NCBI GenBank assembly: GCA_025603075.1
Contig: MU626353.1
Location: 17,302 to 81,301 of the forward strand
Source of the DNA: Neoconidiobolus thromboides FSU 785
Taxonomy: Eukaryota; Fungi; Entomophthoromycota
DNA: 64,000 bases
Direction of reading: 5' to 3'
Positions 34,626 through 62,869 of this stretch are shown here, piece by piece. The translations under genes and the position numbers were made by a program. Position 1 is the first letter of the stretch, and each line of letters opens with the position of its first letter. Below the pieces are notes generated by a model. It was not told where the DNA came from, did not search any database, and saw only the letters and a program-made list of their open reading frames with translations.

Positions 34626-34818
34626 TAAGTAGTATTAGTTTATTAAAGTATCATTTTTATGCTTATTTGTATCATTTTATTTTATAATTTTTATTCTGTT
34701 TTTTAAACTAGTTGCATAAATTAATTATAATTAAGTAGTATTCTTTTGCAATGACTTCTAAAAATAAACTTTTGAATTTTAAATTATTACTTTTCTGCCT
34801 TTTTGACTAAAATCAAAA

Positions 34819-36249: not shown

Positions 36250-39200
36250 TTAAATCATAGCCATAGTAGAATATAACTTATTATCGTAAGCCGAATAAGT
36301 TAATGCCAATTTAGTTAACATATAGGGAATAGTAGCCTCTGGAGAATTTGGATTTTTACTTCCCATCTCTAAAATTTGATGATAAGTTTCTAATGATAAT
36401 TTCCACAAAGTTGCTTTTTCCGAATCGGTATAAACGGTAGCCGTCCTCATATAATGAGTTAAAAAAGTCACTTCACCGACAAAAGTACCTGGTAATATAG
36501 ATTCCATTGTATATTCAACTAAAGATTGAGTGGATGGATCCATAGTTGGAATTTTAACTCGAAGTAAACCATTTTCAAGTATATAAATAGCATCCGGTTT
36601 ATCACCAGATTTCCATAATATATCATTAAAATTATATTCCACTTTTTCAAAATATTGAGCTAATTGATGTAAGGAAGGATAGTTTACATCTTCAATTTCT
36701 TGAAATGCTTGTAATAATAAACCTAAAGGTTGGCGTGCATTTTTTATCAATGATGAAGTTTCATGAACTGAAAGTAATAAGTTAATATTCAGATTTTATA
36801 TTATTAATATTAAAATTTTACTTTGTGAATAAACTTTGATTGCTGCTTCTTCAATTTGTCGATTACGTGGTGAAGATGAATAATCAGCTTCAAGTAATGG
36901 ATAAGTACCAGAAGTACCTAAAAGAAAAGAATTATTATTATATAATCTAATCTATTTTAATAGTAAAATTAAATTACCTAAATGAGTTGATAATCTAGAA
37001 GATACTTGATTATTTTGTTTAGCTAATTGATAAAAATTGGATAATAAAGTATTTTCACACCATTCTAATGCTTGATTACATTTTTCAAAATATTTAACAT
37101 AACCTTCATTATTGGATGACCAAATACCTGCTTTTCTTAATGCACTACCAGTATCCGAATCTAATGTTACTCCAGATATTACTAAATAAATACTATTGGA
37201 AGATAATCGATACAAAATTCTAGAGAAAGCATCCGTAGCTGAAAAATCAATACCACCAACTAATGTAAAATCTAATATAATAAATCGAATTGGTGCTGTA
37301 CGATGTCGATGTCCTTTTAATATTTGAGATATGGAATGATCTAATTGATGAATTGTACCAAAAAACATAAAACCTTGTAATGTAATTAATTTCACTTGAT
37401 TACCAACAGTTTCTAAAAAGGTTCTTTGATGATATAATCGACGTACTGTTGATGTAACACATGTACCATCAGAAATAGTTTTAATTGGTGATCGATGAGA
37501 ATAAATTAATACAAAAAACATACAAGCTAATACAATTCCAAAAAATATACCTTCAATAAATCCAACAAATCCCATTGTTAATACTATCAAAACAATAGTA
37601 ATATATTCTAAGGGATGTACTATTGTATATGTATCATATACTGCTTCTTTAATCAATTCAATACCCATATGAAATATTAATGCACCAACTAATGGAGTTG
37701 GTATAAATCCTACTATAGATGGTCCTAATAATAATATAATAAAAGTACATAAAGCTAATAATAACCCAGCTACTCGACTACCACCACCAGATCTTATAAA
37801 TATTACTGAATTTGAATAAATTAAATAATTTTGTACAGAACCAAATAAGCCAGAAGTTAGATTAGATATACCATGTCCAACTAATTCCCTATTAACATCA
37901 ATATCTTGAATTCTAGTACTTACTGCTAAAGCAGGTACATTAATTGGTACGTGTAATATACCAAAAAAAGTTAATGCAAAAATAGCAGGAATGACTTTAG
38001 GTAAAGTTGACCAAGATATTAGATAAATATTAAAATTTAAATAAAAATCATAAAAAGGTTTGATTGGTGTTGGTAATGGGAACAACCAACCAATTTGTCT
38101 TAATGTATTTAAATTGCCATTCAATAAAAATACAAACATATAAAATACAATTGGTATTAAAAAGAAAAAACAGGGCGTAACTAAAGGATGTTTGATTATT
38201 CTTGTAGCTATTTGTAATATTAAGGATAATACTAATGAACTTGTCCATAAGGGTAATAATTCAACTGAAAAATAACTTGCCCATATAGACCAATCAAAAG
38301 TGGGACTCAATTTAGTAGTCAATTCCATAGCGGTAGCTAATAAAAATACACCCACACCACCAATACAACCAATTAATATATGCCTTGGAAAAAATTCCAT
38401 TAAAGAACCTAATTTATACCAACCTAAACCTAAAAATACAATTCCAGTAACAATAGTACTTAACGCATATGCTACCATAACTGTTGGTATAACATATTGT
38501 TTACCAGCTTCTCCTAAATCATTTAATATAATATTACATATAATATGTAAAAAAGGTACAACTTCAATCATAAAACCACCATTACCACCTCCAAATCTAG
38601 AGCCTCCACTAGCATAAATTAATTGAGCAATAACAGTACTTAAATAAATAAAATGTTAATATACATTATATATAATTTATAAAAAATTAAAATTATTTTT
38701 TTATCTTACCTAACTAAAAACATAGATATACCATCTGGACCAAAATCTGAAAACATAGGTAAAGCAGTTGGAAAAATAATAATACCAAAAGAAACAGCAT
38801 CTAATACATTTAACATAGTACCAATTAATACAGCAGGAATAGACATAAATCCTGTTTTAAAACAATCAATAATAAACTCTTTTTCTAAGAAGTTAGTATT
38901 CTTATAAACTTCATTGTAAATCTTAATAAATGCATTATCAGTTTCCATTACAATAGTTTCTCCATCTTGTTTTTTACTTTCTATTGAAGAATAATTATTA
39001 TTATTATTATCATTATTATAATTGCCATTATTTGGAAGTAAATGTGAATTTTCATGAACTGATATAGGTCTTGAATTCACTACCATTTGTTCTATTCCAT
39101 CTTTAATTCCTAACATAGGTGACATTGGTCTTGAATTATTAGTTGAATTTAATGGACTATTTTTACGACTTTCAATAATTTCTTGTTCAAAATCTTCTTC

Positions 39201-39715
39201 ATCTGATTTTTCTAAATCTTCCTCTATTTCATTAATAGTTGGGATATTATTGCCCATATGAGAATGAAATGAACCTCTACCAATACTACCAGCTCGTTTA
39301 TCAGTACTAATCAATTGTGATAAATTGGATTGAAATTGTTCATTATTGAAATCTTTTCCAAGGGAAATACTAGAAGTGTGATGAATTATATCTTCAGTTA
39401 CAGCCATTAAACCTTGATTGGCCAAAGCTAATGTTTGATTACGAATACTATCACCATCTTGGGTGTAGGAAGCATTATCTGTCAATAGAATAATTAGTTA
39501 AAATATTAATTGAATAGAAATTGAAAATAGTTAGATTTACCATCTTCTGAAGGAGTAGGACGATATAAATTCGAATAATAAGAACGAGTAAATGAAGAAG
39601 ATAATCGATTATTTTGTAATGAATCATAACTTTGAGATTCTAAATCCGTGGGTAAATGTTGATTTAAATGATGAGGACTTTTAGATAGTAAAGTTCGTCC
39701 TTTATCTTGACTCAT
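36250..39715 (-). CDS. VSB1: SulP/SLC26-STAS-cNMP-binding membrane protein (Vsb1/YGR125W-like)
   Basis: PAVLIGTMLNVLDAVSFG, FFGILHVPINVPAL, ELVGHGISNL, STAS motif TLQGFMFFGT...LDFTLVGGIDFSA, cNMP domain GTFVGEVTF. Confidence 0.9.
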
Positions 39716-41027: not shown

Positions 41028-41128
41028 ATGTGGGGATGTATTTTTTGTTTGGTGATTTCACTAATAATTTTTCATCTTAAATTGCACTTAAAAATGGGAA
41101 AAAAGAAATTAAAAAAACAGCTTCATAT
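41028..41128 (+). mobile_element. 105-bp MITE (second of a triplet)
   Basis: ATGT-GGGGATG...CAGCTTC-ATAT. Confidence 0.8.
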
Positions 41129-41231
41129 GGGAGTGTTTTTTTTGACTTGATTATTTTTTTCATTTTTTAAGTGCTATTTGAGCGGGAAATTTATTAGTAA
41201 AACTCTCAAACACAAAAATACATCCCCATAT
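41125..41231 (-). mobile_element. 105-bp MITE (third of a triplet), sharing ATAT with the previous copy
   Basis: ATAT-GGGAGTG...CATCCCC-ATAT. Confidence 0.9.
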
Positions 41232-41600: not shown

Positions 41601-42260
41601 ATGACTTCCAAATCAACTGAATACATTTCTAATTCTCATGATACTCCCTTACTCCATTTTTCAGGAGCTTCTTTAACATCTAATCCAATGTCACCCCAAT
41701 ATCCTTGTGGAGATCAAGAAGCTAAGGCCACTATTATTTATCCAATATTAAAAACTGGATGTGTTATAAGAAGCATGGAGCTTACATATAAAAAAGATGA
41801 GAAAGTGGATAAAGCTTATAAATCAACTTATTATTCTTTGACTACTGAATTAATGAATGAGAAGAATCAATTGTTGATGAAATTGACTAAAGCGGAGTTT
41901 GAATTATGGTATACAAACTATAATATTTACTATTTAAGCGAGGGGAATGAAAGCAATGGGTATAAGGAAATCAGATTAATTAAAACAACAATTCAGATAT
42001 TTCCTTGTTACACATTAAAAATGATTAAAATTGATGGGGAGATCCTAGAATTTGATTTTAAATCATTAAATTTAATGTGTTTTTCATGGGGAGTTTACAA
42101 TAAAAGTACAGGAAGGGAAGTTTTAAGATATGAGAATAATTATTTCAAAGGGGGGAAATTGATTCTTTTCGAGGACTCAGGTATGTTAGATGTATTCTTT
42201 TTAATCATTTCCTTCCTTGCAATTCATTATGAACCATTTCGAAGTAAGATGGAAAACTAA
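41601..42260 (+). CDS. LOR/tubby-C/scramblase-like family member 1 (219 aa)
   Basis: Intronless; beta-rich core and C-terminal hydrophobic helix DVFFLIISFLAIHYE; closest to the 55242 gene. Confidence 0.75.
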   Translation: MTSKSTEYISNSHDTPLLHFSGASLTSNPMSPQYPCGDQEAKATIIYPILKTGCVIRSMELTYKKDEKVDKAYKSTYYSLTTELMNEKNQLLMKLTKAEFELWYTNYNIYYLSEGNESNGYKEIRLIKTTIQIFPCYTLKMIKIDGEILEFDFKSLNLMCFSWGVYNKSTGREVLRYENNYFKGGKLILFEDSGMLDVFFLIISFLAIHYEPFRSKMEN

Positions 42261-42308
42261 ATTAGGTTTTATACAAGTAGTCAACACTACTTATATTTTG
42301 TGGATGTG

Positions 42309-42348
42309 AAATAAACAAATAAACAAATAAACAAATAAACAAATAAAC
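42309..42348. repeat. (AAATAAAC)5 tandem repeat
   Basis: Five perfect 8-mers. Confidence 0.9.
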
Positions 42349-42718
42349 TATAGCTATCTTTTATATGCTTTTTTATGAGTGATGATCTATCTATAAATTG
42401 TTTGTTTAAAATTGTTTTCAACTCATCAGTAATAAGTATTAATATAAGTCAAATAAAATATCTGATTATTAATAGATTATAAAAATAATTTTTTGAACTT
42501 TTTTAAATTACCTTATGCAAACTTTAGAAATTATTTTTGTTGATAATTTTTAATAATATAAACCAAAACTTTATATCCCTAGTTTGCTTTTTATTTGTAA
42601 TAACTATAGAGCTAACTAAAATCAGAAAAAAAATAAACAATTATATAAATCCTGGTATAATATTTTTAATAATAATATGATTAACATGAATTAGAAAATT
42701 ATAAATATATAAAACAAG

Positions 42719-42813
42719 ATATGGGGATGTTTTTTCTGATTTCATTTTTTAAGCGCTATTTGAGTGGAAAGATTGTTAGTAAAATTCTTAAACAAAAAAA
42801 CACATCCCCATTC
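42719..42813 (-). mobile_element. MITE with internal deletion
   Basis: ATAT-GGGGATG...CATCCCC-ATTC. Confidence 0.85.
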
Positions 42814-43056
42814 TACGACCCATTTGTTTAATGTCGTAGTATTTTATAATTTAGGGATATTTTTTATTTTAAACAAAAAGATCAATAGATCCTTTACGCC
42901 ATTATAACTCTATTGGGTCCTAGCTAATAGACTATTAAGAGATGATCCATGTTGAAGCTCTTCTATAATAATGGTATTTATGCTTTGATAAATTAAAATA
43001 ATAGCCTAATTACAAGAAATAGAGCTAAAAAAGTCCCAAAAAAAAGTTGTAACAGC

Positions 43057-43075
43057 TATATATATATATATATAT
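43057..43075. repeat. (TA)n microsatellite
   Basis: 19 bp of alternating TA. Confidence 0.9.
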
Positions 43076-43377
43076 TTAAATTGCCTACCCAAATGAGGAT
43101 ACAGCGCAACGTTTATGTAAACCAAACCTCAATACTTTGTCTATTTTGTTGTATAAAAATAGTTAATATCATAGTATTCATATTTTTAAATACTTGAAAG
43201 CGTAAAGATGACAGAGTGTTCTTAAGATTATGCCTTCAACACTAAAGCTGTTTAAATGCTATTTTATAGTAGATTGATATATATTTCATATATAAGGATA
43301 CTTTTTATCTAGTATTGCTCAAATTTTAAGTATATATTATGTTATATCATAATCAGATCAAATATGGATTGATAAAT

Positions 43378-43481
43378 ATATGTATATGTTTTTTTTGGCT
43401 TCATTACTTTTTCTATTTTTAAGCACTATTTAAATGGAAAAACCATCAGTAAAACTCTTTAAAAAAAGTACATTCCTATAT
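43378..43481 (-). mobile_element. 105-bp MITE, degenerate left end
   Basis: TTTTTTGGCTTCATTACTTTTTCTATTTTTAAGCACTATTTAAATGGAAA...CATTCCT-ATAT. Confidence 0.85.
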
Positions 43482-43839
43482 ATTGTTTGAACTTAATATC
43501 TCATATAGTCCATTTTGCTTTACGTCTAAATTTTAATCAAAGTCATAATTTTTAGTATCCTTATAATAGATATGATAATATACAATAAAGTAATTTATTA
43601 AAGTTGTCAAGTATTAAAAGGTGCAAACTTAGGGATAAGTGTGATGTTAATAAAAGTTAGAAATATTGTATTTTAAAGATTATTTTGTTATGTTGAGTTT
43701 TCTATTTTTTTTATTTTTATAGATATAAATTTAAAAAAAAAACCAAAAGCTGAGTATTAAAATAAAAAGAACTTGTAAATATTTGATTCGATTATTAACA
43801 CTTAATTATTTATCCTGACTAAATCTATATTAGTTTCAC

Positions 43840-44290
43840 TTAAATGCCTCACTGTATTTCTCCTGATGGTTGGGCTCTTCATAGGCTTTTTTTAGAATTA
43901 CCAGTTTTCTGCTTTATCGAAATTTATTAACATCCTTTTATTTCTCTTTTTTACCTTTGTTCTTACGTGTTGCATTTTCTAGTACCCTTACTGCTTTTCC
44001 ACCATTATCTCTGACTTTGAAAACCATTATCCGATTCACTGGCCTCTGGGCTCCATATTGATAGTTTAGCGCTCTACATTCAATCAACCCAATAACATTT
44101 CATTGCTTCCCAATTCCATCCCTTATTCTATTGTTAGAAGCCTTTTCGAGAAAAAGGTAAAAAAGATTTTATTTCACCTCTCCGACTTCTTATAAAAGTA
44201 GGAATTTATCAAACTCAGCTCTTATCTTACTAGGTGGTTTTCTCTCAATAATTTAGTCTCTTAATTTACTAACTTAATTTTCTATTGTTT
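43840..44290 (-). mobile_element. Possible Ty3/gypsy integrase relic
   Basis: VFKVRDNGGKAVRVLEN...ILKKAYEEPNHQ resembles the Hx4H zinc-binding start of the integrase; contains stops. Confidence 0.4.
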
Positions 44291-45227
44291 TTAGTTGATA
44301 AAAGACTTAAAGCTACAGCTCTTTGAAAAAAAAATTATTATTTTATAGTAGCTTACTACATAGCATATTTTTTATAATTTGCTTAAAAAATATATGTTAT
44401 TTTATTAATTCGCAAAAGTTGAAGATGAAAATAATTATACGCACTGCTAAATTTAAATGATTCTACCTTTATTAAAAGTTATTCGATATGACTATAGCAT
44501 ATTTAATGTGTAAATTAAACTTATAAACAATTTACGCTATAAAAAACGCCACTTCTAATAATATTATTTGAGCTATTATAACAAAACACTAGAGGGTTTT
44601 GGCATTGAGTACATTTAACAATTTTAGTCATTTGACGAGAGATTGAGCTTCCAAAAACTTTATTATCTAAATAGCTATAAGGAGAAATATTCGATTGTTT
44701 AGGTATTGTATTTCAAAATGTTACACTACTTTGTAAGGTAATTCAATACGTTTCAAAAAGTTTATTACATCTTTACAAACCAGAGCGGCGAATTTAAATT
44801 ACTTATTTACTATTTAAAGTCAGCTCAACTTGACAAGCTTTTACAACTGTTAAAATTCAAATTCCGACCTTAAAATATCTTTGTCAGTAATTGTCAGATT
44901 GTATTTTTTTAAAGGCTAAATCCCTTGAGCTTTAGTGAGATTTATCTCTAAACTTTTACTTCTAAACGAACAGTTAATCCGCTGAGCATTTGAACTTCAT
45001 CGGTTCTAAGGTTCTAAAAAATATGGTTGAACTAACACTCAAAACATTGAAATAAAGGCTAACTTTTCAGCCAACAAAAAATAGCAATTTGAGTAAAAAA
45101 TTGGTTTTTTGCTCAATTTTGAAATTTCAATAGAAAATCGGTGAATATAAGTTTGACCACAAGCTTTTCTAAATAGAAATCATCTAAAAAATCTCGAAGG
45201 CAAAGGACTATAAATACAAATAAAAAC

Positions 45228-46046
45228 ATGAGTTTAAAAATTACAAATAATATAAACATAAATATGGATAAAAAAGAAAAAGTCGGTTTTAATAATAATA
45301 ATTTAAATGAATTTGACAATAATCTAAATGAGTTCCTGCCTAGTTATAATGAAAGCTTAACCCCAGAGTCAAGTACAAGAGGAATAATAATGAATACAAA
45401 CAATTTTCCAGAACCAAATATAAGAGCCCCAGGGATAGATATGAATAGTTTTATACAGCCAAATTCAGAAGATTCAGGAATGAATATAAATAACTACAGG
45501 TTAATTCAAACTAGATATGATGTTAGCATAGATGGGCTTCGTAAGAAAAAAATCGGCTTCAAGGATAACCAAACTGGACAAGTATACAATTACAAAGTTA
45601 CAGAAAAAAAAGCTAAATATAGAGGAGATAGTAGAAAAACAGTGATTAAACTTAAGCGTAATAAAAAATTTTCAAAGACTGGTAACTGGATGATAGACTG
45701 TAAGAAGAAACATGAGGGAAGATATAAAGATATAACATTATTTAAAGATTCGGTTAATTCAGTTCCAAGGTATACTATGGGTTTTAGAAGATCAGATAAT
45801 CAAATCATGAATCTATATTGGACCACGGAATCTATCATGAATAATAATTGGTGCTTATTTGATGTTAATTTTAATAAGCTTATGGAATATAACATTCAAA
45901 CATTTAAACATAATTCTTTAAGCCAATTCTGTTTTATTGATGAAGTTGACAAACAACTTTTTTTATTGGTTTTAGCTTTTGTTATCGTAAATTATGGATC
46001 TGATAATATGGGAGATTCCTCTAGTGATGATAGTGACAGTTCTTAA
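45228..46046 (+). CDS. LOR-like family member 2 (272 aa)
   Basis: LPSY motif; DNQTGQVYNYKV, NLYWTTESIMNNNWCLFD, IDEVDKQLFLLVLAFVIVNY; closest to the 48479 gene. Confidence 0.8.
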   Translation: MSLKITNNININMDKKEKVGFNNNNLNEFDNNLNEFLPSYNESLTPESSTRGIIMNTNNFPEPNIRAPGIDMNSFIQPNSEDSGMNINNYRLIQTRYDVSIDGLRKKKIGFKDNQTGQVYNYKVTEKKAKYRGDSRKTVIKLKRNKKFSKTGNWMIDCKKKHEGRYKDITLFKDSVNSVPRYTMGFRRSDNQIMNLYWTTESIMNNNWCLFDVNFNKLMEYNIQTFKHNSLSQFCFIDEVDKQLFLLVLAFVIVNYGSDNMGDSSSDDSDSS

Positions 46047-46416
46047 TTTAGTATTTTAACCATTTATATTAATAAATTTCCTTATATACAGTATCAAATA
46101 AACGTTTGAGCGTTCAATATCCCTATTTCATAAATGTATAGTTGAAGCAAGATATGATTAAGATAAATAAAACAATAAAGTAGTTATATTATACTATCAA
46201 TAAACTACAGTTATTTTAATGTATTGTATTTAGTCGTGTTGTCATTTTACATTATAGAACCTTAGATCCAAAAATAAACTTATAATTTAAGTCATAAATA
46301 AAAAGCTTGTTTATTCCAATCAGCTGAACAAACAGGGATACAAACAACAACTTAAAAACTTTAAATCCATGGTTAACTATTTTTGATTTATAATATAAAA
46401 CCAATCTTAAATTTAA

Positions 46417-47049
46417 ATGAGTAGTGCTGTAGAATCTGCTTCAAACTTGCCAATTGATATTAACCATCCTCCGCGTTATAGTATGGTACTTGAAAATGAT
46501 ATTGAAATCCAACAAACAGAGGAAGAGGAATTCGAAAACATAATAGAACCAACTAAATTTCAACTTAGTAGATCGAAGTATATTAGAAGGGAAGTATGTT
46601 GCACCAGTCTAGATGAAAGTCAGGTGTATTATATAAGTGTAGTAAAAGAATCAGCTAAGTTGATAAGTAAAGAAAGGCAAACAATATTAAAATTAAGTGA
46701 GATTAAAAGTGGTTTTCGAGGGACAGCATGGAGAATAATACCTATCTACGAGGATTTAATAGATACCTTAGAAGTACTATTTGGGATGAGTAAGTTTTCT
46801 GAGATCGATTCTCTTGACGTTAAGATTATAAAGAGAGATGGAAACGTGTTCAAATATCAAGTAGCCAAAAAAGCTTTCTCTTACACTAGATATAAATTGA
46901 TTGATATAAGATATCCAGAACAAAAAGTATTGGAGTTTCGAACATCTTTATTTGGTCCTAATTCTATTAAGTTATATACTCCTGTAAGCAAGGAGGATTT
47001 CGAAATACTTCTTTTAGCTATTATTTTTTTTGTTACATATAAAAATTAA
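46417..47049 (+). CDS. LOR-like family member 3 (210 aa)
   Basis: PPRY motif; C-terminal SKEDFEILLLAIIFFVTY. Confidence 0.75.
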   Translation: MSSAVESASNLPIDINHPPRYSMVLENDIEIQQTEEEEFENIIEPTKFQLSRSKYIRREVCCTSLDESQVYYISVVKESAKLISKERQTILKLSEIKSGFRGTAWRIIPIYEDLIDTLEVLFGMSKFSEIDSLDVKIIKRDGNVFKYQVAKKAFSYTRYKLIDIRYPEQKVLEFRTSLFGPNSIKLYTPVSKEDFEILLLAIIFFVTYKN

Positions 47050-47131
47050 CATTGATTTTTATTTGTAATATTTTAGTCTAGTTATTAATAAAGTAAACAT
47101 CAAACAATTTAAATCCCGATTTTCGATAATC

Positions 47132-47230
47132 AAATAGAGATGTGTTTTTAAGAATTTCAGCAACGATTTTTCCACTCAATAACACTTAAGAAACAGAAAA
47201 GTGACGAAACCAAAAAAATATGCCCAATAT
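47132..47230 (+). mobile_element. Degenerate MITE
   Basis: AGAGATGTGTTTTTAAGAATTTCAGCAACGATTTTTCCACTCAATAACACTTAAG...TATGCCC. Confidence 0.8.
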
Positions 47231-47759
47231 TAAAATATACAACTTTAGTATTTGACTATAATTATTAATAAACTCATGGTGACAGAGTTTTTATAGCTTT
47301 ATAAGTTAAAATAAATATAGTTCATTCTATTTTTTAAAAACACCTAATATTGACTACTTCTTTTCTGATTATACTAAAAATTGAATCAATTCTAAAAGTG
47401 TGTATTTAAAAAATACACTGTAATACAATGAGAAGCAGCAGACATTTATACTATTTAAACTAACCTTAGGGAACTAATACTAATTATAATGTCATCAAAT
47501 GAAGAAAATGAATAAACAAATTTGTTTGTTTAACTAATAAATCGTTTGCTATTTTATTATTATTAAAGTATAATTAAAGCTAAGTAAAATAATACTTTCT
47601 TAATAGGCGAATTAATCCAATAGCTCATAAAATTTCTCAAAAGCAATACTTTATTAATATACTTTAAATATATAACTTTTATTTATCACTTAATAGATTC
47701 TGTTAGAGTCTTTCAAATACTTTAATTTCTAAAAAAAAGCAAGCATCAAAATTAAAATA

Positions 47760-48330
47760 CAACCAATCCCTTCTCTTCCTCTAGATCTCGTTAACTGAGT
47801 CAGTCCCAAACTCCCATTAGTATATGGTGCTTTGCCCACTTAGCTCCTGCTTCTTTTTCTACCATTTCACGCTTTAAATCTATTCAAGCTTTTTGTTTTC
47901 GTTGCTCCGCTTTGGGCCTTGCACCTCTCCATATATCTATTTGATGCCCAGTAGCTATTACGCTCTGAACTGCATTTTCTCTTCCCTTGGTTTAAACTTC
48001 AATCTATTTTCGTATAATTATTCTTTTACTCCGTTTTTTCCTCAAATTATGAGGTACCCTCCTTTGATTAGAGCCTTTGTCCTGTGAGCAGGATTACTGG
48101 CCATACACAAAAGTTTCACTGATTCTTAAGTTGGACTCATCACCTTCCTATACCTTTCTCTTCAACCCCATTACTCTGCCCATTCAATTGAAAACCCTAT
48201 AGAAATTGGAATAAAAATGGACCTCATTTTGTCATCCTCAATCTACAAAAGACAAATGGGGTCTAGACTTAATATCTATTCTTCCAAAAAGGCCCATGAA
48301 ACGTGAAGTCCCTAGAGCTAATTGACTTTG
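47760..48330 (-). mobile_element. Possible LTR-retrotransposon integrase core relic
   Basis: GC-richer island; QSNGVEEKG resembles the integrase PQSNGxxER motif; many stops. Confidence 0.3.
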
Positions 48331-48478
48331 GTATTAATATACTTTAATTTAGCTAATAAAATACTTGGGCCATAAGCCTTTCAAGAGAAAAAAAAATCAA
48401 AGTACAGGTTATGATATTTTATTATAACATATAACTTAATAAAAAATAAATATTAGAGTATTTGGATAGACGATAAAA

Positions 48479-49141
48479 TCAAGATCCACCACCACTAGAA
48501 GCAGCACGTCTTCTACGCTCAGCGTCCATAGTAAGAGTGACTAAAAATATAAGATATATAGGTAAATCAACTTCATCAATATACTTAAATTGTTTTAAAG
48601 TATTCTTTTTAAACATATTGATATGGTATTCCAATAATGGTTGATTTTGAGAGTCAAATAAGGTCCAATTGTTTCCAAGTATTGAAGTAGTAGTCCAGTG
48701 GAGATTTGCCATAGTATTATCTTGTTTTTTGAGATTCAATACGTATTTATCTCTAAATTCAAACGTTTTTTTAACCATGGAAACCTCTTGATAACGTTCT
48801 GAGTTTTTTACCAAATAATCGACATTCCATCTAGTAGTTGTAAAAGAGAACCCCTGGCGCTTTAACTTTAAAATTTCTTGACCTGAGAGTAAATCAAGGA
48901 ATTTAGAAGTATTATAAGATACTTTAAAATTATAAGTCTCCCCAGTTTGATTATTTTTAAAATCAAACATCTTCTTAAAGCATCCTCTTTTACTTACTGT
49001 ATATGTAATTAATTCATTGTCAGCCATATTACTACTCCCTTGAAACTGGGAACAAATATCCGTATTATTCTCCAATGTATCATTGTAGCTAGGTGGTGCT
49101 TCAAGTTGGTTATTAAAGGGCTTTTCAGTTTCTAAACTCAT
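48479..49141 (-). CDS. LOR-like family member 4 (220 aa)
   Basis: PPSY motif; YTVSKRGCFKKMFDF; ILKLKRQGFSF; IDEVDLPIYLIFLVTLTMD. Confidence 0.8.
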   Translation of the reverse strand: MSLETEKPFNNQLEAPPSYNDTLENNTDICSQFQGSSNMADNELITYTVSKRGCFKKMFDFKNNQTGETYNFKVSYNTSKFLDLLSGQEILKLKRQGFSFTTTRWNVDYLVKNSERYQEVSMVKKTFEFRDKYVLNLKKQDNTMANLHWTTTSILGNNWTLFDSQNQPLLEYHINMFKKNTLKQFKYIDEVDLPIYLIFLVTLTMDAERRRRAASSGGGS

Positions 49142-50090
49142 TTTATTTTTCCTTAAAATCCTAAATTTCTCAATTTATTTATATCTTTGATTACAATGTA
49201 TATATTCTTAATTAGAACTCTTATTTCTCTTTTTTAGCCAAATAGATCATTATTTGGGGCCTATCTTCATTTTAACTAATTACTATTGATTACAATTATA
49301 CCGCTTTATTTATTTAGTTGTAATAGGCCATTAGATTATTCCTAACTTTTCTTTACAGATTCATCTTCATATAATTTATATAGTTAGCTAGAGATAAATA
49401 ACTGCAATGCTATAAAAGAATTTACAGAAAAATAATTTTATTTTCAGAGATAGAAAAAACATACTGTTGCAACTAATAACTCTCTTACTTTCATGTCCAT
49501 GAATTTATAAAGAAACATCAAGAACGATCTAATAAAATATAGCATTAAATTCAATCATAAAAGCTTATTTTTGATAAGCTTCTAAAAAATACATCCCTAT
49601 TTTTGAAGCTTTATACTAAATAAGGTCTTTGATTAAAACCTACTCCTTAGACCTTGTTGATTATGATAAAATAACGGGCAAAGATACAACTTAGGTTGTT
49701 GTAATGACATAATATTACGCGCAGCTTTGTTGCTTTAGCCAATCATAATCCTTTCGGTTTTTCTTACCAAAGCTCAATTAATTTATGACTAGCAGCTTCT
49801 CATCAAAAATACTCAGTAATATTTATAGTATAATCGATAAATTTAAAAATGGTTTAAATTTTAAAAAAACTCTAATTCTACTTTTCGTCCCATTTCCTAT
49901 CTAACGCGAAGTTCTTAGTAAACCATTAAATAAAACTGGGCAAAAAAACATTTTAATAAGTTATCTAAAATTAAAAGGGCAAATATTTTTGTAATCAGTA
50001 TTTAATTTGGAATTTCTGCTGAAAATCAGAATTGAGCATTTAAAAAGTTCTTTAACCCATATGTGGGAGGGGGACCATCTTAATTTTTAA

Positions 50091-50142
50091 ACCTTTTTCT
50101 ATTTTTAAGCGCTATTAAGTAAAAAATGCTAAAATTCTAAAA
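50091..50142 (-). mobile_element. MITE internal fragment
   Basis: CTTTTTCTATTTTTAAGCGCTATTAAGTAAAAAATGCTAAAATTCTAAAA. Confidence 0.55.
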
Positions 50143-51122
50143 AGCCTATTTTGAATAATAATTTAAGTGGCCTATTCTCATACTTATTATTAAAAATGTA
50201 TCTGTGATTTAAAATCCTAAACAATAACAATAAAAAACAATTTAAAATCAAAGGAAAAATAAAAATTAGAGTTTTTTAAATAACATATTCATTGTTTCTG
50301 TTTTGAGATCTAAAAATATTGAAAATTCAAGCTCTTTTTGGAACAAACGTTTATTTATTTCAATACAATCTTTAAATAAGATGCTCAAAGGTAACTTAGC
50401 TTTATAATCTCGATTATTAAGGCTTATTCTAACCAGAGAAATAGATATTTTAAAAACAATGTTACAAGTTTTACATAAATATAAGGTAAATGTGAATATT
50501 TGTATGTTGTATCATGGCTTTTAGTTAGACAGGTTGTCTAAAATATACTCAAATATAGTTTTAATTTCATTATAGTTACATATACTTAAATTGAACTTGT
50601 TTTAATAAAAAAGTTAGTTTTTTTATTTATATTTTAAATATTAATATTCAAATATAATATAGCACATGAAATGATACTATAATGAATTACTAATTTATAT
50701 ATACATGAAAATATTTTGTAGTATGTACCCAAAGAAAAGCTTTAATTTTATTAAAAATAAAAATTTGGTAGAAGGTTTAAATGTTCACACTACTTACCCT
50801 ATTCTATAGTTGGGTACAATTATTTAAAGCTGAATCCTATACAGCTTTACTTAGCCAATTCTAAATCGGGTACTAAAGCACTCAATATTCTTTGAGTATC
50901 GGATAGCTAATTATTCTCTCTTCTCCCCCTCCTTCCTCTTCATTTCCTCCTCCTACCTTTTCATTTAACTATTCTCATTATTTTCTTCAATAAATAAAGA
51001 CACTTTATGATGTAGTTTTCAAGACTCAAAAACCAAAATATATTATGATAATACCACTTTTTATTCCTGTGATTTTTTTATAATTGTAGATTAAATTTCG
51101 AAATCATGCTAAGATAGTGATT

Positions 51123-51227
51123 ATATGCGAGTGTTTTTTTTGACTTCACTATTTTTTCATTTTTTAAGCGCTATTTAAGCGGAAAATTTGTTAGTAAATT
51201 TTTAAACACAAAAATACATCCCCATAT
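51123..51227 (-). mobile_element. 105-bp MITE
   Basis: ATAT-GCGAGTG...CATCCCC-ATAT. Confidence 0.9.
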
Positions 51228-51567
51228 GTTCATCCTACTATTAAGAACTTTTGATAAATCTTGCTGAAATTGTTTATTAGTGAATGCTAATATTAGTATT
51301 AAAGTACAATAACCTACAGTTTAGCATTACAAACATTATTATGCTTTGCTAATGATATTTATATTAATTTTATAGTAGCCTTAAATACTTTTTTTAAATA
51401 GACAAGTTATAAATATTTTTTAGAGATTGTAAATTAAATTAATTGTTCTAATCTAAACATTATACCTGATCTTATTAATTAATTTCAAAATATTTATGTA
51501 ACACAGAAAATTTAATATATAAACAAATAAATAACACTCAAATATTTTAAATTTGAAGATAAACAAA

Positions 51568-52188
51568 ATGATTTCAAAAATTTTTCAAAGTATTATGAAC
51601 AAAATGCCTTCTCAAGAATCTAAAAATTCCACTTCAGACTTAGAAGAATATTTTGACCTTATTGGACTAAGAAAACCAAATCTCAAAGTGGCCAGTTATA
51701 CAGTAACGGTAGAAGGATTCTTTGAGAAGCAAGTGGAATTGGTAAACAAACAAAATGGTTTATCATGCAAAAGTATAATTTCAATCGAGGAAGCAAAATA
51801 TTTCAATAGATACAACTTATGTATGCTAAAATTAAATCAATGCAATTTCTCAAAAAGGATTACAAATTGGGAGATAATTACTTTTAATTGTTGTTCCAAA
51901 AGATATTCAGCTATTACGCTCGAATCCAAAACCTTGAATTTAGCCTTACTTTATCTTATCACTATGAATAAAAGGAGTGGAGAAATTATTAGGTACATAT
52001 GGATTCCAGCGCAATCTGGTTTTAAATGGACATTATTGGATTCTCGGTCATGTAATAAACTTTTGATATATAATGCTTGTTCAACCAAGGTGCATACTTT
52101 AAATCAGTACTATATTATTGAAGAAGAAGATTTAAACATTTTTTTATTTACTTTATCAATCATTATTGTTGACAATAAAAGCAAATAA
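51568..52188 (+). CDS. LOR-like family member 5
   Basis: First ATG at 51568; YTVTVEGFFEKQVEL; IEEEDLNIFLFTLSIIIVD. Confidence 0.75.
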   Translation: MISKIFQSIMNKMPSQESKNSTSDLEEYFDLIGLRKPNLKVASYTVTVEGFFEKQVELVNKQNGLSCKSIISIEEAKYFNRYNLCMLKLNQCNFSKRITNWEIITFNCCSKRYSAITLESKTLNLALLYLITMNKRSGEIIRYIWIPAQSGFKWTLLDSRSCNKLLIYNACSTKVHTLNQYYIIEEEDLNIFLFTLSIIIVDNKSK

Positions 52189-52720
52189 CGTTCAAAGGGC
52201 TGGTTTGAATCAAAAATATTATAGCTTTTTGGTCAGAGGATTTATCAGTATGTATATAGCTGTTAATTTCACTGTTAAATACTAAAGCATAGCTTTTGAA
52301 ATTGATTAATTACAATAAAATGCTTATTAAATGTGATGATTTTTTATATTGAATATACGTATTCTTTGATTAAGTATTAAAAAACTATTTACAGAAGTCA
52401 CTTGTTAATAATACGATACTATAAACCATAATAATTTCAAGTGTTATTTTATTTAAGTATCTTTTACTATTAATCTAGATTGCGAATTGATAACCTATAG
52501 GATAATGTATTCTTAACTAAATGCTATTATTATCCTAATTGCAGGATAAATTTATAACCATAACTTCTAAAATAGTGGCCAGATAAGGTTTTTTACCTTG
52601 GCGTTTATTTTAAATTTTATAAGCGTATTTATAGATGGCATTTTACTGCTTCAAAGATAGGTTTATAGAACGTTTATAGAACGTTAGTTAAAAATAGGTA
52701 AAATTAAAACTATTTTATAC

Positions 52721-52825
52721 ATATAGGGAGGTTTTTTTGATTTCATTACTTTCCTGTTTTTTAAGTGCTGTTTGAATGGAAAAATTGATAGTAAAATTCT
52801 TAAACATAAAAATATATCCTCATAT
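52721..52825 (-). mobile_element. 105-bp MITE
   Basis: ATAT-AGGGAGG...TATCCTC-ATAT. Confidence 0.85.
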
Positions 52826-52969
52826 ATTTGTCAAACTATATGCCCCTGAAATGAGTATTTTTGGCTTATCAATTTGCTTTCAGAGGTAGTAACTTAACTT
52901 TAAATATTTGAAAGACATCTTATAAATAAATCTAAACACTATTCTATCAAATCTAGTATTGGTAATATA

Positions 52970-53077
52970 ATATGACGATGTATTTTTGTGTTTAAGGATT
53001 TTACTATCAATCTTTCTGCTCAAATAGCGCTTAAAAGATAGAAAAAGTAATGAGACCAAAAAAACGCACCCTTATAT
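52970..53077 (+). mobile_element. 105-bp MITE
   Basis: ATAT-GACGATG...GCACCCTT-ATAT. Confidence 0.85.
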
Positions 53078-53352
53078 ATCTTAACAAAGTTAACTAAAAA
53101 ACATTTATAGTTTATTATAAAGTATTCATAATAATTTAATACTTATTTCACCTTCTTTTTATTGATAAAGTTTGAAAAATATCTCAAAAATCCATTTGAG
53201 CTCGTAAAAGCTATAATCATTTCATAGTTCTTATTTTTTCTGAAATTACTATTTATAACACTTGGAATTTTGCACCTTGATTTAAAATAACAATTCACCG
53301 CACAATCAGATATAAATAGTTAAAAAGAAAAAGTGAGATAATTTTCTATAAA

Positions 53353-53988
53353 ATGTTCAAAAGTCTTGATGTTAGACATAGTGATTTACCACCAAGTTAT
53401 GAAGAAATCACTCAAAATCAAAACTCAATAGGCAACGGTATTGAGAGTTCAATCAAAGATTTTAAACCTCAGGAATTCAAAGTAAAATATCAATCTGTAT
53501 TATCAAATAAAATAAAATTTAAGGGTGACAAAAATTACCAAATAGTAGTGGAAGTACATTCTGGTAAAGCCAAGCTTTTAAACAACGATCTGAGTAAACA
53601 TCTTTCATTAGAATACAAAAAAGGACTATCAAAGTCAACAGATTCCCTTGCTTGGGAAATAACCAAAAATAAACAAGTTGCAAAGACATATGAATCAATT
53701 ATAATGTTTAAGGAGTTAATTAATAAAGAAGCAAACTACATCATCCAAATGAAAGCCAAGGAAAATAAAAAAGTTTATTTAACATTGGAGCGTATTGAAA
53801 ATTCAAAAAATGACTGGGTGTTGTATTATAAAATCAATCCGAGTCTAGTGCTCTTATTATATTCAACCAATTTAGTAGCAGCTGACAGTTTAACTCAATA
53901 CTTTAAAATGACCGCTGAAGAGTTAGATGTGTATTTGCTTTGCCTGGCTTTCGTAATTAATAGTCATAAAAATAAGGACGTGTTGTAA
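53353..53988 (+). CDS. LOR-like family member 6 (211 aa)
   Basis: PPSY motif; TAEELDVYLLCLAFVIN. Confidence 0.75.
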   Translation: MFKSLDVRHSDLPPSYEEITQNQNSIGNGIESSIKDFKPQEFKVKYQSVLSNKIKFKGDKNYQIVVEVHSGKAKLLNNDLSKHLSLEYKKGLSKSTDSLAWEITKNKQVAKTYESIIMFKELINKEANYIIQMKAKENKKVYLTLERIENSKNDWVLYYKINPSLVLLLYSTNLVAADSLTQYFKMTAEELDVYLLCLAFVINSHKNKDVL

Positions 53989-53999
53989 TACAAGACTAT

Positions 54000-54330
54000 A
54001 TTCGCTCTTTCCTAGGATTGCTGTCATTAATAAAAGACGAATGTAGTCTTCCATACCGTATAAGATTACTGTTTAACGTCTTATTAGATGATTACTAAAT
54101 TATATTCTGACTACTACACCCTCATTTATGAAAATCCATGTACTATCTCTGATAACTGGATTTTTTAATGTTCCCTTTTATTTAAATAAAGTTACTATTA
54201 ACATCTGTTCAACCCCATATTTACAAAGAAAATCACTGTTGTAATACAGAACTTTGTTTAATGGTTTAATAAACTTCAAATCTATACTAAATATTTAAGA
54301 ATTTTCTCACTATGTTACTATTTAAGTATC
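54000..54330 (-). pseudogene. Possible highly decayed LOR-like 3' remnant
   Basis: DSTWIFINEGVVVRI*, KTLN, GMEDYIRLLLMTAIL resemble the family C-terminus across frameshifts. Confidence 0.35.
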
Positions 54331-55241
54331 AAAATAATATGATCACAGCAAACAGCCCATTACTTGGTTAAAAAAAACAGTTGAAATATATATGATCAAA
54401 TATTATATATATGACTAAACATGATTATGCTGATAATACAATACTTCTATTTGAATTAATTATCGAAATATCGAAATAATCTAGGTTGATAAGAGTGTAT
54501 TATTTTACGATAAATCTAATAAAATGTGTATCAAAATATAATTTATACTAAATTCTATCAAATAGGATTTATTTTTTTACCTCTTTGTTTTGAGTTTTAT
54601 TAAATTTCTTAAGCGACTACATGTATCACTTTTTATTTACATACACATCTAACTTTTTATATATTCTGCTTTTTTTTGTTTTATACCAAGCTATTAGCTT
54701 TGATGCTACCCTCGTGTAAAATTAATGGTAAACGGTAAGCGTTGGCGCAGTCGAACTTTAGCTCATAAACTATGTTCAAGATGTGTCTTATATTTAAACA
54801 AAAGATGCAAGCTATTGGTATTAATATTCATTTACAAAATTTGTTGCCTTTTTTCCTCCATGTTGTATTTTGTTATAGAGTCTTGACTGACATAATAAAT
54901 CCTTTAAGTTATTTATATCAAAATCGAAGTATAATTTGATCTTATTCTACACTGATTATAAAGTCCATTTAGCCTCCATCTGATCACTCAAAACTGATAA
55001 ATTTTTCATAATTTATAAAACTATTGATATTATAGCGCGTAATCTTAAGTAATAAGATTATTCTCTTTTACAATGACGCTTCTTTCAGTTTTGTAAAGTT
55101 TCTTTTTATTTAAGTTGGCCCGAAAATAAATTGAAATCTAAACGAAAATAAAAACTAAGTGGTCACTTAATAGACAAAAAAGTATAAATAGGGTCGTATT
55201 AAGATGAAATAAATCAAAAGATTAAAAAACAACTTTATTAA

Positions 55242-55889
55242 ATGAACAAACAGCCAGAACAATACTCTCTAGTACTTTCAAATAAAACTATGCCTGGTTA
55301 TGAGGAGACACCATCGCATTACGGAAGCAACAATCCACATAGTGAAAAAAAAGAATTGATTAACTATACTGTTAAAAAATCAGGGTGTGTAATGCGAAAT
55401 GTAACCATTAGTGACGACAAAAAGAGCATCACCTATATAAGCAATGTATTTATATTAACTGCTGATTTATTAAATGAACATGGGGAACCAGATTTAAAAA
55501 TTTCCCGTAGCAATTTTATACTATGGTACAGCATTTGGGATATTACCTATTTAAAAAGGGAAAATAAGGTTTATGACGATATAAAAATGGTTAAAAAAAG
55601 ATTTCAAATAATTCCAAGTTATACTATTAGAATGCATAAAAATAATGGCGAAATAAGCGAATATGAATGGTATCCGACTTCCTTTTTTTGCTGTTGTTGG
55701 GCCCTTTATAAAAAGAATATGTACGATGATAAGATTTTACAGTATAACAACCGCTTGTTTAAAGATAGCGAGTTATTTCAGTATAGATACATTGACCCGG
55801 ATGATTTGAGAATTTTCCTGTTAACAATTTCCTTTCTTACAATTCACTATGAGCGTCCTAATCATCAATCTAGCGTTATCTTTTACTAG
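55242..55889 (+). CDS. LOR-like family member 7 (215 aa)
   Basis: YTVKKSGCVMRNV; Cys cluster FFCCCW; IDPDDLRIFLLTISFLTIHYE. Confidence 0.8.
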   Translation: MNKQPEQYSLVLSNKTMPGYEETPSHYGSNNPHSEKKELINYTVKKSGCVMRNVTISDDKKSITYISNVFILTADLLNEHGEPDLKISRSNFILWYSIWDITYLKRENKVYDDIKMVKKRFQIIPSYTIRMHKNNGEISEYEWYPTSFFCCCWALYKKNMYDDKILQYNNRLFKDSELFQYRYIDPDDLRIFLLTISFLTIHYERPNHQSSVIFY

Positions 55890-56190
55890 CTTATTTGTTG
55901 TCATAGAATATACTAAATATGAACAAACTCACTATGTATATTAATAAATTGTATGCCAATTTAATCAAGGCTAAGATTTTATGTATGTTTTTCAAGTATA
56001 CGATGGGAGAAACCCACTTTAAGATTTATTAATTATTGATATTAAGGAAACCAAATAATATGATTATTTGATAATAAAATTTTAAATAGTAAAACTCTTC
56101 TCCTTTTTAATTTATATATTTCGTATAGTAAATAAAACATGAATAAAATTTTAATCATTATATCAAATATTTACAAAAAGATATACTCTA

Positions 56191-56890
56191 TCAAATTAAG
56201 AAGATGGACGAAAGTTTAATCAAAATTATGGTTTTAGTCTTATCATTCTTTTTAGTTTATGAGGATGAATAATCGTATTTGTAATAAAGATAATTTATTG
56301 TGTTAGATTTTAATAAGGTATGGGGATGTATTATGTTTAAGAATTTTACTAACAAATTTTCCATTTAAATAGCGCTTAAAAAATGGAAAAAATAATGAAG
56401 TCAAAAAAAACACCCCCATATCATCTCGATCTTCTATATTATAAAGGTAGAATTGGTCTGGTAATTTATTTACCGATTTCTGAATATACTCTGAAATTAC
56501 ATCCTGACTATTGGTAACTTTAATAATGTAAGTAAGTGGAGACTTAAAGCTTATCCTAGTTACTTCTATCTCCTTGATTTCCGGAGTTGTTGGTGAATTC
56601 AATAAGATATCCCATCGAATATTCTTTAAACTATATTTAATGTTTTTCGATGTTAGTTCAGCTTCTTCTTCCTGATTATGATATTTAGCACTTAATGTTT
56701 TTATGTTGACTTTGTATTTGATAATCCCATCTTCATTCACAAGTTTAAAATCTCTTCTTAAGATGTCATAGCGTTCAAGGATATATTTATTTATATAGTT
56801 AAGGTTCGGTCGATTTAACTTGGAGTAATTTAAGTCATTAGAGTCTACACCTTTATATTTAATTTAAGATATTCTTCTTAAAATGTTCAT
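56191..56890 (-). pseudogene. LOR-like pseudogene disrupted by a MITE and two stops
   Basis: ATG at 56890, TAA at codon 9, ILRRDFKLVNEDGIIKYKV; removing the MITE restores EDRDDILLK. Confidence 0.8.
56318..56421 (+). mobile_element. 105-bp MITE inserted in a coding sequence
   Basis: GTAT-GGGGATG...CACCCCC-ATAT. Confidence 0.9.
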
Positions 56891-57353
56891 CTTCAATTAT
56901 GTCAACTTTGATAAAAATGAGTTATTGAGCTGAAACATTCAATTGAAGTAAATAACTGTTATGTACTTTCGCGTAAATATGAAATATCAATGCTCGGAAT
57001 TGGTTTATAAATTAAATATTCTATATAGAAAATTAATAAATTTGTTAAAAAGCCCAAAGCTAAATTGTATTTTGCTTAATTTAATTTTTCCAAAATTTTA
57101 AAATGTGGCTAAAACAGGTTACTCCTTTTCGCCATATATATTTAAAACAGATTATTGAAATAGTACAAGTAGTTATGAATTCTACTAGAGTCATATCATA
57201 AAATTTAGAATTTAGAGTGTGGATCTGTTGAATTTTCTATCAAGATTAGTATACTTTATAAAAATTAAAAAAGTCGTAAATTCGAATATAGCCCCATCTT
57301 ATAAGGTCATTTATACTTGAAATATAAAAATCGATAAATAGATAATATTTACT

Positions 57354-57989
57354 TTATTCATGAAATACGATAAAAGATAACACTAAAAGGAATGTCTTAA
57401 TAATACCTTTAGATAAGTAAGAATATTGTACAATATTTCCATTACCACAAGTGTCAGCTTTATATTTCAAAATAATATCCTTAGATTGACCCTTAGGATA
57501 AATGTATAAACTGGTTGAAATAGGGAATGCTTTGAATATTTCGTACTCTACAAGGTTTCCACAAAGGTCGTATAGTACAATGTTATAAATTGTTTCATGC
57601 TGGAAATCCTTTTTGACTACTTCGACAGAAGGATAAAATTTAGTGTTATTGATTGTATACAAAATGACAAGGTTTCTTTCAGTACAATACCTATTAGCAT
57701 AATTTAAATCCATTACTTCAAAATTGTCATCAGTCAATTTTGCTCCTAATGCATCCACTTTTACACTATATACTGCTCCACTCTCCTCATTTAAATATCG
57801 AAAGTTTCTGTTTAAAAATCCATGTCTTAGAACAACACAATGGCCTTTATATTCAGACACAGTGATTGGGGAGGATGAATAATCGATACTAAGTTCAACT
57901 TCCTTAAAGTTTATGTGACATCTAGGTCTTGATATGGCACTTTGGTAGCTAACCTTTGATAAAGGCAAAAGCTGGCAATCGGAATACAT
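57354..57989 (-). CDS. LOR-like family member 8 (211 aa)
   Basis: VLRHGFLNRNFRYLNEESGAVYSVKV; GIIKTFLLVLSFIVFHE. Confidence 0.75.
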   Translation of the reverse strand: MYSDCQLLPLSKVSYQSAISRPRCHINFKEVELSIDYSSSPITVSEYKGHCVVLRHGFLNRNFRYLNEESGAVYSVKVDALGAKLTDDNFEVMDLNYANRYCTERNLVILYTINNTKFYPSVEVVKKDFQHETIYNIVLYDLCGNLVEYEIFKAFPISTSLYIYPKGQSKDIILKYKADTCGNGNIVQYSYLSKGIIKTFLLVLSFIVFHE

Positions 57990-60445: not shown

Positions 60446-61515
60446 TATAAAGTAAAAAAGTGAATTACATTAATTTAAACTTTTTTATGCAAACACAAAT
60501 TTTATTTATTGAAGGAATAATTCAAAATTAATCCTAATTTAGACATTGACACAAAATGAAATAATTAGATTTAAAACAATTTGATATCACTTGTTGAGGT
60601 TTTAGTCTTTAATTTAAAAACGATTTGATATCATTTAGGCTGAAAAAAACAAAAAAACAATAATCAAGGTCAATACAAAATTTTTATAATTGTATATTTG
60701 CAATTGAACATCTTGATATTCAATATAGAATGAACTATATTTATCAAAATTCTTTACTATGAAAGATAAGGTTGACTCTAAAATTGATATTTAAAATTAT
60801 AAATTGTTAATTTCTTATCATAAAATAATAATTTATAATGTAATTTATTAACTAACATGCATTATCAGATTAAGTATTTAATTACTTTATCAGTTTATAA
60901 AAAACTATAAGCATAGATTTACACTGTTAAATAGTTTAATTCAAAATTAAAACGTTATTCTCTTTTTTTTTCTTTTTTTAACAAGTTATTGATTTTTTTT
61001 CCAGTCTTATTTTGTTCAAAATCTGCAAACTATGTGTAGGCTGCATCAAAATAGTCAGTTTTTATTTTGAATTTAATATACAATAATATATAAAACATGT
61101 TTTCACTTGTTACTATATAGAAATGTTAAAATTGGTTTCATTTTACTCAATTCTTAAATATCTTGTATTTTAAAAATCTTACTCCACATTTTATAAAATA
61201 TTTTTTTAATTACAAAAGCACCTAACACAGTTTTAAAGTATTTTTATGCAATATAAACGATATAATGATAATCTTTATTTATTATTATAACCACTTGCTT
61301 TTTAATTATTTATTAATTTAACTGTCAATAATTTGAATGATATTAATATTTAGTAATTTATTTTTGCCATTTAACAGAATGCTTACTTGCTTAGTAAATA
61401 TTAGAATTTTTAAATTTCTCGAATATTAAATAATAATGTAATTTATTAATAATAATTAAATTGTTAGCTTTATTATGTTTACAAACAAAAATCTCAAATT
61501 TTGAAATTAATCAAT

Positions 61516-61619
61516 ATTTGGGGATGTATTTTTGTGTTTAAGAACTTTATTAATAGCTTTTCCACTCAAATAGCGCTTAAAAAATGGAAAAAGTAATAAA
61601 GTCAAAAACATCCCCATTC
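61516..61619 (+). mobile_element. 105-bp MITE
   Basis: ATTT-GGGGATG...CATCCCC-ATTC. Confidence 0.9.
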
Positions 61620-62763: not shown

Positions 62764-62869
62764 ATATGGGGATGTATTTTTGTGTTTAAGAATTTTGCTA
62801 ACAAATTTTCCGCTTAAATAGTACTTAAAAGATGGAAAAATGATGAAGCCAAAAAAAACATCTTTATTT
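62764..62869 (+). mobile_element. 105-bp MITE
   Basis: ATAT-GGGGATG...CATCTTT-ATTT. Confidence 0.9.

Follow-up and report, generated by a model that had tools for sequence, protein, structure and literature searches.

The closest described counterparts of the gene family reported here are barrel-forming proteins, i.e., the LURP-one-related (LOR) proteins, the phospholipid scramblases (PLSCR1-4 and yeast Aim25) and the tubby/TULP domains. How LOR and PLSCR proteins function has yet to be settled, and LOR genes also occur as multigene families. In animals, PLSCR1 is a substrate of the ligase NEDD4-2, which binds PPxY/LPxY motifs of the kind that PLSCR1 carries (PMC12368045), and the WW domains of Rsp5 likewise bind PPxY (PMC2171029). 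Here, we describe a tandem array of related genes at positions 41601-57989 of a 64,000-nucleotide (nt) stretch of Neoconidiobolus thromboides FSU 785 DNA (assembly GCA_025603075.1, contig MU626353.1, positions 17,302 to 81,301 of the forward strand; this whole stretch is referred to below as the window), the products of which are predicted to combine a tubby-like barrel with an N-terminal tail that in many copies bears a PY motif.

With a confidence that lies modestly above even, we favor the interpretation that the array represents a lineage-specific family of barrels of the LOR/scramblase type that evolves by tandem birth-and-death and is linked through its PY motif to Rsp5-type ligases. The identity of the family is well supported. 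A typical product would be a small cytosolic protein composed of a disordered tail of about 40 residues, a 12-stranded tubby-like barrel and a short hydrophobic C-terminal helix. The ancestral tail probably bore an [LP]PxY motif, a ligand of Nedd4/Rsp5-type WW domains, and the barrels may act as peripheral membrane or lipid-binding proteins, which either would bind Rsp5 as its adaptors or would be ubiquitinated by it as substrates, in the manner of animal PLSCR1 and NEDD4-2. The array itself, situated at a contig end rich in transposons, would have expanded and contracted through ordinary tandem birth-and-death.

The array and the predicted fold of its products

The list of open reading frames (ORFs) in 41601-57989 contains eight intact genes of 194-272 amino acids (aa), placed on both strands, and one broken copy (H). 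The intact genes are A (41601-42260, + strand, 219 aa), B (45228-46046, +, 272 aa from the first ATG; the database gene model begins at M55), C (46417-47049, +, 210 aa), D (48479-49141, -, 220 aa), E (51604-52188, +, 194 aa from its ATG; the mechanical ORF reaches upstream to a TTG at 51553), F (53353-53988, +, 211 aa), G (55242-55889, +, 215 aa) and I (57354-57989, -, 211 aa). The GC content of the window is 21-31%, and its end coincides with the end of contig MU626353.1.

The mutual homology of the copies was confirmed by all-against-all BLASTP searches, in which A and G showed 36% identity over 175 aa, B and D 37% identity over 174 aa, and the remaining pairs weaker but consistent matches, down to approximately 20% identity. 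The family profile matched each copy with E-values of 1e-52 to 1e-82 (1.5e-59 for A), a significance that is high by construction, as the profile was made from these same sequences. The alignments revealed a common layout, i.e., Y-x-V-x3-G near the first strand, followed by T-x-W-x-I, W-x-L, and D-x-x-D-L leading into a hydrophobic helix, with two basic patches (LKLKR and VKK) conserved within the barrel. The longest branch of the family tree, which is a tree of paralogs, belongs to copy C. None of the members has a signal-like hydrophobic N-terminal segment, as judged from the sequences and not by a dedicated signal-peptide predictor. Thus, the array of eight intact genes, their common layout and mutual homology, and the lack of signal peptides (within the limit just given), all of which had been proposed in the first-pass annotation of this DNA, were found as described there. 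Of its "1-2 pseudogenes", one is the broken copy H, and the second is the inverted C-terminal piece of H itself.

AlphaFold2 models were built for copy D and for the divergent copy I on the alignment of 13 members (12 genes of the genome and P0012, a further homolog introduced below). The model of D has a mean predicted local distance difference test (pLDDT) score of 78.7, rising to about 90 from residue 45 on, and consists of 12 strands followed by a helix at residues 192-219; the model of I has the same topology (12 strands and a helix at 194-210, core pLDDT of about 90). A Foldseek search of the PDB with D placed mouse tubby (1i7e) and Arabidopsis At5g01750 (1zxu) at the top. In VIA-align comparisons, D reached Z 12.3 to 1zxu and 10.7-11.4 to tubby/TULP1, the next unrelated structure having 7.5, and I reached 11.9-12.4 to tubby/TULP1, the next unrelated row having 9.0. 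Altogether, the tubby-like matches (1zxu, 1i7e, 1c8z, 1s31, 3c5n, and 2fim) had Z of 10.7-12.4, with the helix inside the alignments; that of D to 1zxu extends through model residue 208 and takes in the C-terminal helix. Among predicted structures, the top Swiss-Prot matches in AFDB were LOR1-17, PLSCR2-4, yeast Aim25, tubby and Bacillus subtilis YxjI, and the neighbors among the AFDB clusters and in the ESM Atlas were nearly all LOR, Scramblase, DUF6593, tubby or "tubby C-terminal-like" proteins.

The models thus have the closed 12-stranded barrel around a central C-terminal helix by which the Tubby-like superfamily (Pfam clan Tubby_C, comprising Tub, LOR, Scramblase and DUF6593) is recognized, and on this predicted structure the family is placed in that superfamily. 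The first-pass annotation had assigned the genes to the tubby C-terminal/LOR/scramblase superfamily, and at the level of the fold this assignment held in AlphaFold2, Foldseek and VIA-align alike, a tubby-like barrel being present in both models when the AlphaFold and Foldseek check suggested in it was made. Another of its suggestions, a Pfam comparison with LOR (PF04525) and Scramblase, gave no match of either hidden Markov model (HMM) at E ≤ 1. In fact, a Pfam-A hmmscan of nine copies found no LOR, Scramblase, DUF6593 or Tub match even at this threshold, but only noise with E > 0.06, and the family profile searched against PDB sequences gave a single chance match and did not find 1zxu. At the level of sequence comparison, this is a new family and not a recognizable branch of LOR.

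The N-terminal PY tail and the C-terminal helix

The first approximately 40 residues, predicted to be disordered (pLDDT < 50 in the models of D and I), are hardly alignable. Nevertheless, an [LP]PxY motif occupies one aligned position in seven of the 13 members, i.e., B (LPSY, at residue 37), C (PPRY), D (PPSY), D2, F (PPSY), P0010 and P0011, and its tyrosine is retained in 12 of the 13, only two other columns of the alignment reaching a conservation of 90% or more. The motif is degenerate or lost in A (PLLHF), E, E2, G (a non-canonical MPGY), I and P0012, with no PY motif left in E and I. Where present, it lies in segments with pLDDT < 50, and the tail is not proline-rich. From this motif, we infer a putative link to Rsp5. 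No cysteine cluster of the palmitoylation-motif type is conserved across the 13-member alignment: G alone has a CCC, and the CC pairs seen in C and E fall in non-homologous columns.

At the other end of the protein, the uncharged C-terminal run comprises 10-13 residues in all 13 members. Because it is this short, the helix is read as the core of the barrel and not as a bilayer-spanning segment, and for the same reason its interpretation as a tail anchor was rejected. Bateman et al. (2009) argue that the equivalent helix is buried (PMC2639001); the predicted models are consistent with a buried barrel core rather than a membrane span here as well.

These features also bear on the possibility that the copies function as Ca2+-activated phospholipid scramblases proper, like PLSCR1 or yeast Aim25. 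PLSCR2-4 and Aim25 are indeed found among the structural neighbors, and PLSCR1 likewise has N-terminal PY motifs and an acidic stretch directly preceding the C-terminal helix. In PLSCR1-type scramblases, an EF-hand-like Ca2+-binding loop lies ahead of this helix, and in the array family the helix follows the acidic D-x-x-D-L segment. Nonetheless, the Scramblase HMM (PF03803) gave no match at E ≤ 1, the best solved structural match is a LOR protein, and the hydrophobic helix is too short for a membrane span, so we regard scramblase activity as unlikely; moreover, even for the PLSCRs the scrambling activity is disputed (PMC3590573).

Expression, distribution and mode of evolution

Transcription of the array was followed in sequencing runs, among which run X5, labeled with the source organism, behaves as RNA: its depth is 0 in the spacers 54400-55200 and 52000-52400, versus 25-40 in the DNA runs. 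For F, X5 yielded a contig of 827 nt, colinear with 53370-54174 including the 3' tail, without a single difference and with a depth of 193; for G, a contig colinear with 55247-56019 at a depth of 9, which reflects low-level transcription; and for I with the remnant of H, a colinear, gap-free contig covering 56384-57982 at a depth of 2550, making I the most abundant transcript and placing the body of H within its 3' part. Such colinear, gap-free contigs indicate that F, G and I are transcribed and unspliced. The database gene model P0004, in which I and H are fused via introns, does not represent the main transcript, as the dominant RNA contig is colinear with the genome. In the B-C stretch, 74-96% of sampled sequence words were present in RNA runs of two studies (96% in X5). 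Of the words of the D-E stretch, 50% were present, and neither X5 nor X6 has an RNA contig that includes the last 189 nt of E.

The distribution of the family was determined by an exhaustive HMMER search with the family profile against 1.84 billion representative proteins, which returned only 11 clusters, eight of them being the window's own genes. P0010, P0011 and a D-like/E-like pair (D2/E2) sit on three other contigs of GCA_025603075.1; all clusters except P0012 come from this assembly, and P0012 from a separate sequencing run (ERR10900026). No relatives were detected in any other named species represented in that collection, and no members were gained when the 13-sequence profile was run in a word-indexed search at E ≤ 10. 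In the genome of N. thromboides there are thus 12 intact family genes, eight of which lie in the array, and at least four dead copies. As far as the searched databases reach, the family is restricted to the species or genus.

The closest pairs are D/D2 (59% aa identity) and E/E2 (61% aa identity), and the same divergent head-to-head arrangement is retained by D/E and by D2/E2, from which it follows that both pairs arose in one segmental duplication. A second old segmental duplication is suggested by the match of window positions 61262-62054 to the start of contig MU626363.1 (L002:250-1160; 71-74% nt identity), which carries P0010 about 2.3 kb beyond the matched stretch in a layout that parallels the position of I and H, together with the fact that the body of H is closest to P0010. 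It may be added that the window ends (63532-64000) in a fragment of a glycosyltransferase-28-like gene that is 98.3% identical at the nt level to the end of MU626368.1, the D2/E2 contig (L001:1-469), whereas the adjacent D/D2 and E/E2 genes are only 69-73% identical; this identity may stem from a duplication of recent date, from gene conversion or from a break of the assembly within a gene present in two copies. On the contig of P0011, four clustered Lipase_3 genes lie next to it (L003:13479-20618).

For D/D2 and E/E2, the synonymous divergence (dS) is 0.8-1.6 and the ratio of nonsynonymous to synonymous divergence (dN/dS, omega) is 0.18-0.38, all other paralog pairs being saturated at synonymous sites. 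These values indicate that the duplications are old and were followed by purifying selection, which is not the pattern that a recent arms race would leave. The rapid duplication and arms-race dynamics put forward in the first-pass annotation are therefore not borne out, and of the duplication, divergence and loss that it described, the gene loss and the divergence are real, and the rapidity is not supported.

The same annotation had suggested that an arms race shaped the array into a repertoire for antiviral or antimicrobial defence, non-self recognition or host interaction. The attraction of this idea is understandable, as the array is tandem, species-restricted, very divergent and accompanied by pseudogenes and transposon insertions, F, G, H and I also occur in other samples in a second haplotype, 8-10% divergent and with an apparently unbroken H, and the distant superfamily members LURP1 (PMC8624885) and PLSCR1 (PMC12003403) act in immunity. 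However, dS is about 1 and dN/dS 0.2-0.4 for the youngest duplicates, the haplotype differences in H, which the reference already carries as a dead copy, correspond to an omega of about 0.4, neither the copies nor the neighboring genes contain an effector, NLR, HET or nuclease domain, and expression is constitutive in RNA from ordinary culture. Nothing seen in this analysis ties the array to infection, viruses or non-self recognition, so the idea is without positive support and we consider it improbable.

The second haplotype itself was seen in the samples X4 (DNA) and X6 (RNA), which contain, at similar depth, a near-identical version of the array and a version that is 8-10% divergent. The differences amount to 51/517 positions in F, 20/233 in G, 47/512 in H and 29/351 in I, and among 32 listed differences in H, 14 are synonymous and 18 non-synonymous (omega of about 0.4). 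In both X4 and X6, one contig connects 56420 directly with 56164, the two being on opposite strands; this corresponds to H without the inversion and without the miniature inverted-repeat transposable element (MITE) that interrupts the reference copy. The presence of two versions could be due to heterozygosity, to a mixture of strains or to duplication of the array. It is distinctly unlikely, in our opinion, that the array is a haplotype-polymorphic repertoire of Rsp5-linked tubby barrels, in which the copies would recognize different lipids or foreign ligands and the set of live copies would vary by strain, as could be the case for H, which is broken in the reference but seems to be both intact and expressed in the divergent haplotype; if true, this would be a previously unknown fungal recognition or defence system.

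A very unlikely alternative is a role as nuclear regulators that are reversibly tethered to the membrane, which has been proposed for tubby and PLSCR1. The architecture common to the superfamily, including a disordered N-terminal tail, and the conservation of the basic patches in the barrel (LKLKR and VKK) agree with this proposal, but at about 40 aa the tails fall short of the length of an activation domain, no nuclear localization signal or DNA-binding feature was noticed (no test being aimed at either), and such a role is unproven for LOR proteins themselves.

Gene death in the family is real and has occurred by frameshifts and by a MITE insertion with inversion. Copy H is the only demonstrably dead copy inside the array. 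In the reference, its body (56422-56863, - strand, profile positions 31-159) stops at a 103-bp MITE (56319-56421) inserted at the break, and its C-terminal piece (56171-56272, profile positions 169-203), comprising the acidic motif, the hydrophobic helix and the stop codon, is inverted and lies on the + strand. The MITE family, about 100 bp long with GGGG/CCCC-containing ends, has at least 20 related copies in the window by blastn (e.g., 74-177, 823-903, 41125-41230, 51131-51198, and 62783-62860), and the depth over the MITE and over 52600-53200 climbs to 10^4-10^5 in DNA and RNA contig sets.

Three further dead copies (16.2-21.2 kb) fall outside the range covered by the first-pass annotation (41601-57989). 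The first is a decayed D-like pseudogene (16232-16663, +), detected as blastx pieces in two frames that are 31-39% identical to D, along with weak colinear profile pieces. The second, a frameshifted D/D2-like pseudogene (19819-20434, +), was recovered as colinear profile pieces in three frames, 42-45% identical to D/D2 and with 71% nt identity to D2, and the third is a frameshifted P0011-like pseudogene (20609-21167, -), identified by both the profile and blastx. Two ORFs for DDE_3 (Tc1/IS630-type) transposases (17158-18588, -, 476 aa, and 21849-23342, -, 497 aa) are interleaved with this cluster, the P0011-like relic lying between them. No further significant relics were found in the array spacers by blastx and profile searches, only hydrophobic or low-complexity matches (E of 0.08-5). 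Lineage restriction, pseudogenes and transposon insertions all fit birth-and-death evolution. That the genes are duplicates without function, carried along in decay within a region rich in transposons, as the four dead copies and the MITEs and DDE_3 transposase ORFs interleaved with the family might suggest, is extremely improbable and largely refuted by eight ORFs that stay open despite the frequency of stop codons in DNA with 25% GC, by dN/dS well below 1, by strong and specific transcription with silent spacers, and by the confident predicted folds of D and I.

The neighboring genes (8693-14338 and 30463-39485) encode an MFS (major facilitator superfamily) transporter, a GH38 alpha-mannosidase, a Tim54-like protein, a Bax inhibitor-1 and a sulfate permease adjoining an ORF with a cyclic nucleotide monophosphate (cNMP)-binding domain. 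They are of ordinary housekeeping types, without an obvious functional link to the array.

Assessment and comparison with known systems

Several points weigh against the interpretation that we favor, i.e., a birth-and-death family of barrels linked by a PY motif to Rsp5-type ligases. No family HMM matches, and the structures on which the superfamily placement depends are predictions made from an alignment of 13 sequences. The PY motif is absent or degenerate in six of the 13 members, including the top-expressed I, so binding of Rsp5 cannot be a function common to all copies. Neither a conserved cysteine palmitoylation motif nor a proven lipid-binding site was found, and the function of the products is a proposal drawn from motif and predicted fold. 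On the side of expression, the copies for which individual transcripts were established are F, G and I, and the label "RNA?" of the runs is a guess.

Taken as a whole, the finding is a well-documented annotation of hypothetical proteins and not a new mechanism, and the surprise it carries is moderate to low. What it adds to the tubby/LOR/scramblase superfamily is a sequence-orphan, species-restricted family in an early-diverging insect-pathogenic fungus. The statement of the first-pass annotation that no such array had been described in fungi agrees with the literature searched, where work on LOR proteins concerns plants only.

Among the known systems, Tubby/TULP domains (PF01167) have the same fold, with Z of 10.7-12.4 over approximately 150-168 residues including the central helix. 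They differ in their greater size (about 260 aa), their elaborated loops and their defined phosphatidylinositol 4,5-bisphosphate (PI(4,5)P2) site, and the array family has no sequence match to them. DUF6593 (PF20236, fungal tubby-C-like) is also fungal and of similar size, and a DUF6593 cluster of the ESM Atlas (141 members, mostly Zoopagomycota) is a close structural neighbor, with a template modeling (TM) score of 0.62 by model and 0.77-0.79 by hit, but its HMM does not match the array family; no paper in the searched literature mentions DUF6593, which therefore gives no guidance on function.

The LOR family (formerly DUF567; PF04525, with LURP1 and At5g01750, 1zxu) resembles the array family in its length of about 200 aa and in a 12-stranded barrel around a C-terminal helix preceded by an acidic stretch. 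At5g01750 is the best solved structural match (Z 12.3), and LOR1-17 dominate the Swiss-Prot matches in AFDB. In contrast to LOR, the array family has no sequence match to PF04525 or 1zxu, possesses an N-terminal PY motif, and is confined to one fungal species in the databases searched.

Finally, PLSCR1-4 and Aim25 (PF03803) share with the array family the barrel-plus-helix fold, a disordered N-terminus (with PPxY/LPxY motifs in PLSCR1 and a single [LP]PxY in seven of the 13 array-family members) and an acidic segment before the C-terminal helix. The array family differs from the PLSCRs in having no HMM match and no conserved Cys-rich palmitoylation motif, in a much shorter and proline-poorer tail, and in a shorter hydrophobic helix. 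It may be said, then, that the PY-tail-plus-barrel architecture of animal PLSCR1 recurs in the N. thromboides family. Since the function of both LOR and PLSCR proteins is unsettled, this small and highly expressed family with a clean PY motif could be a simple test system for the link between such barrels and Nedd4/Rsp5-type ligases.

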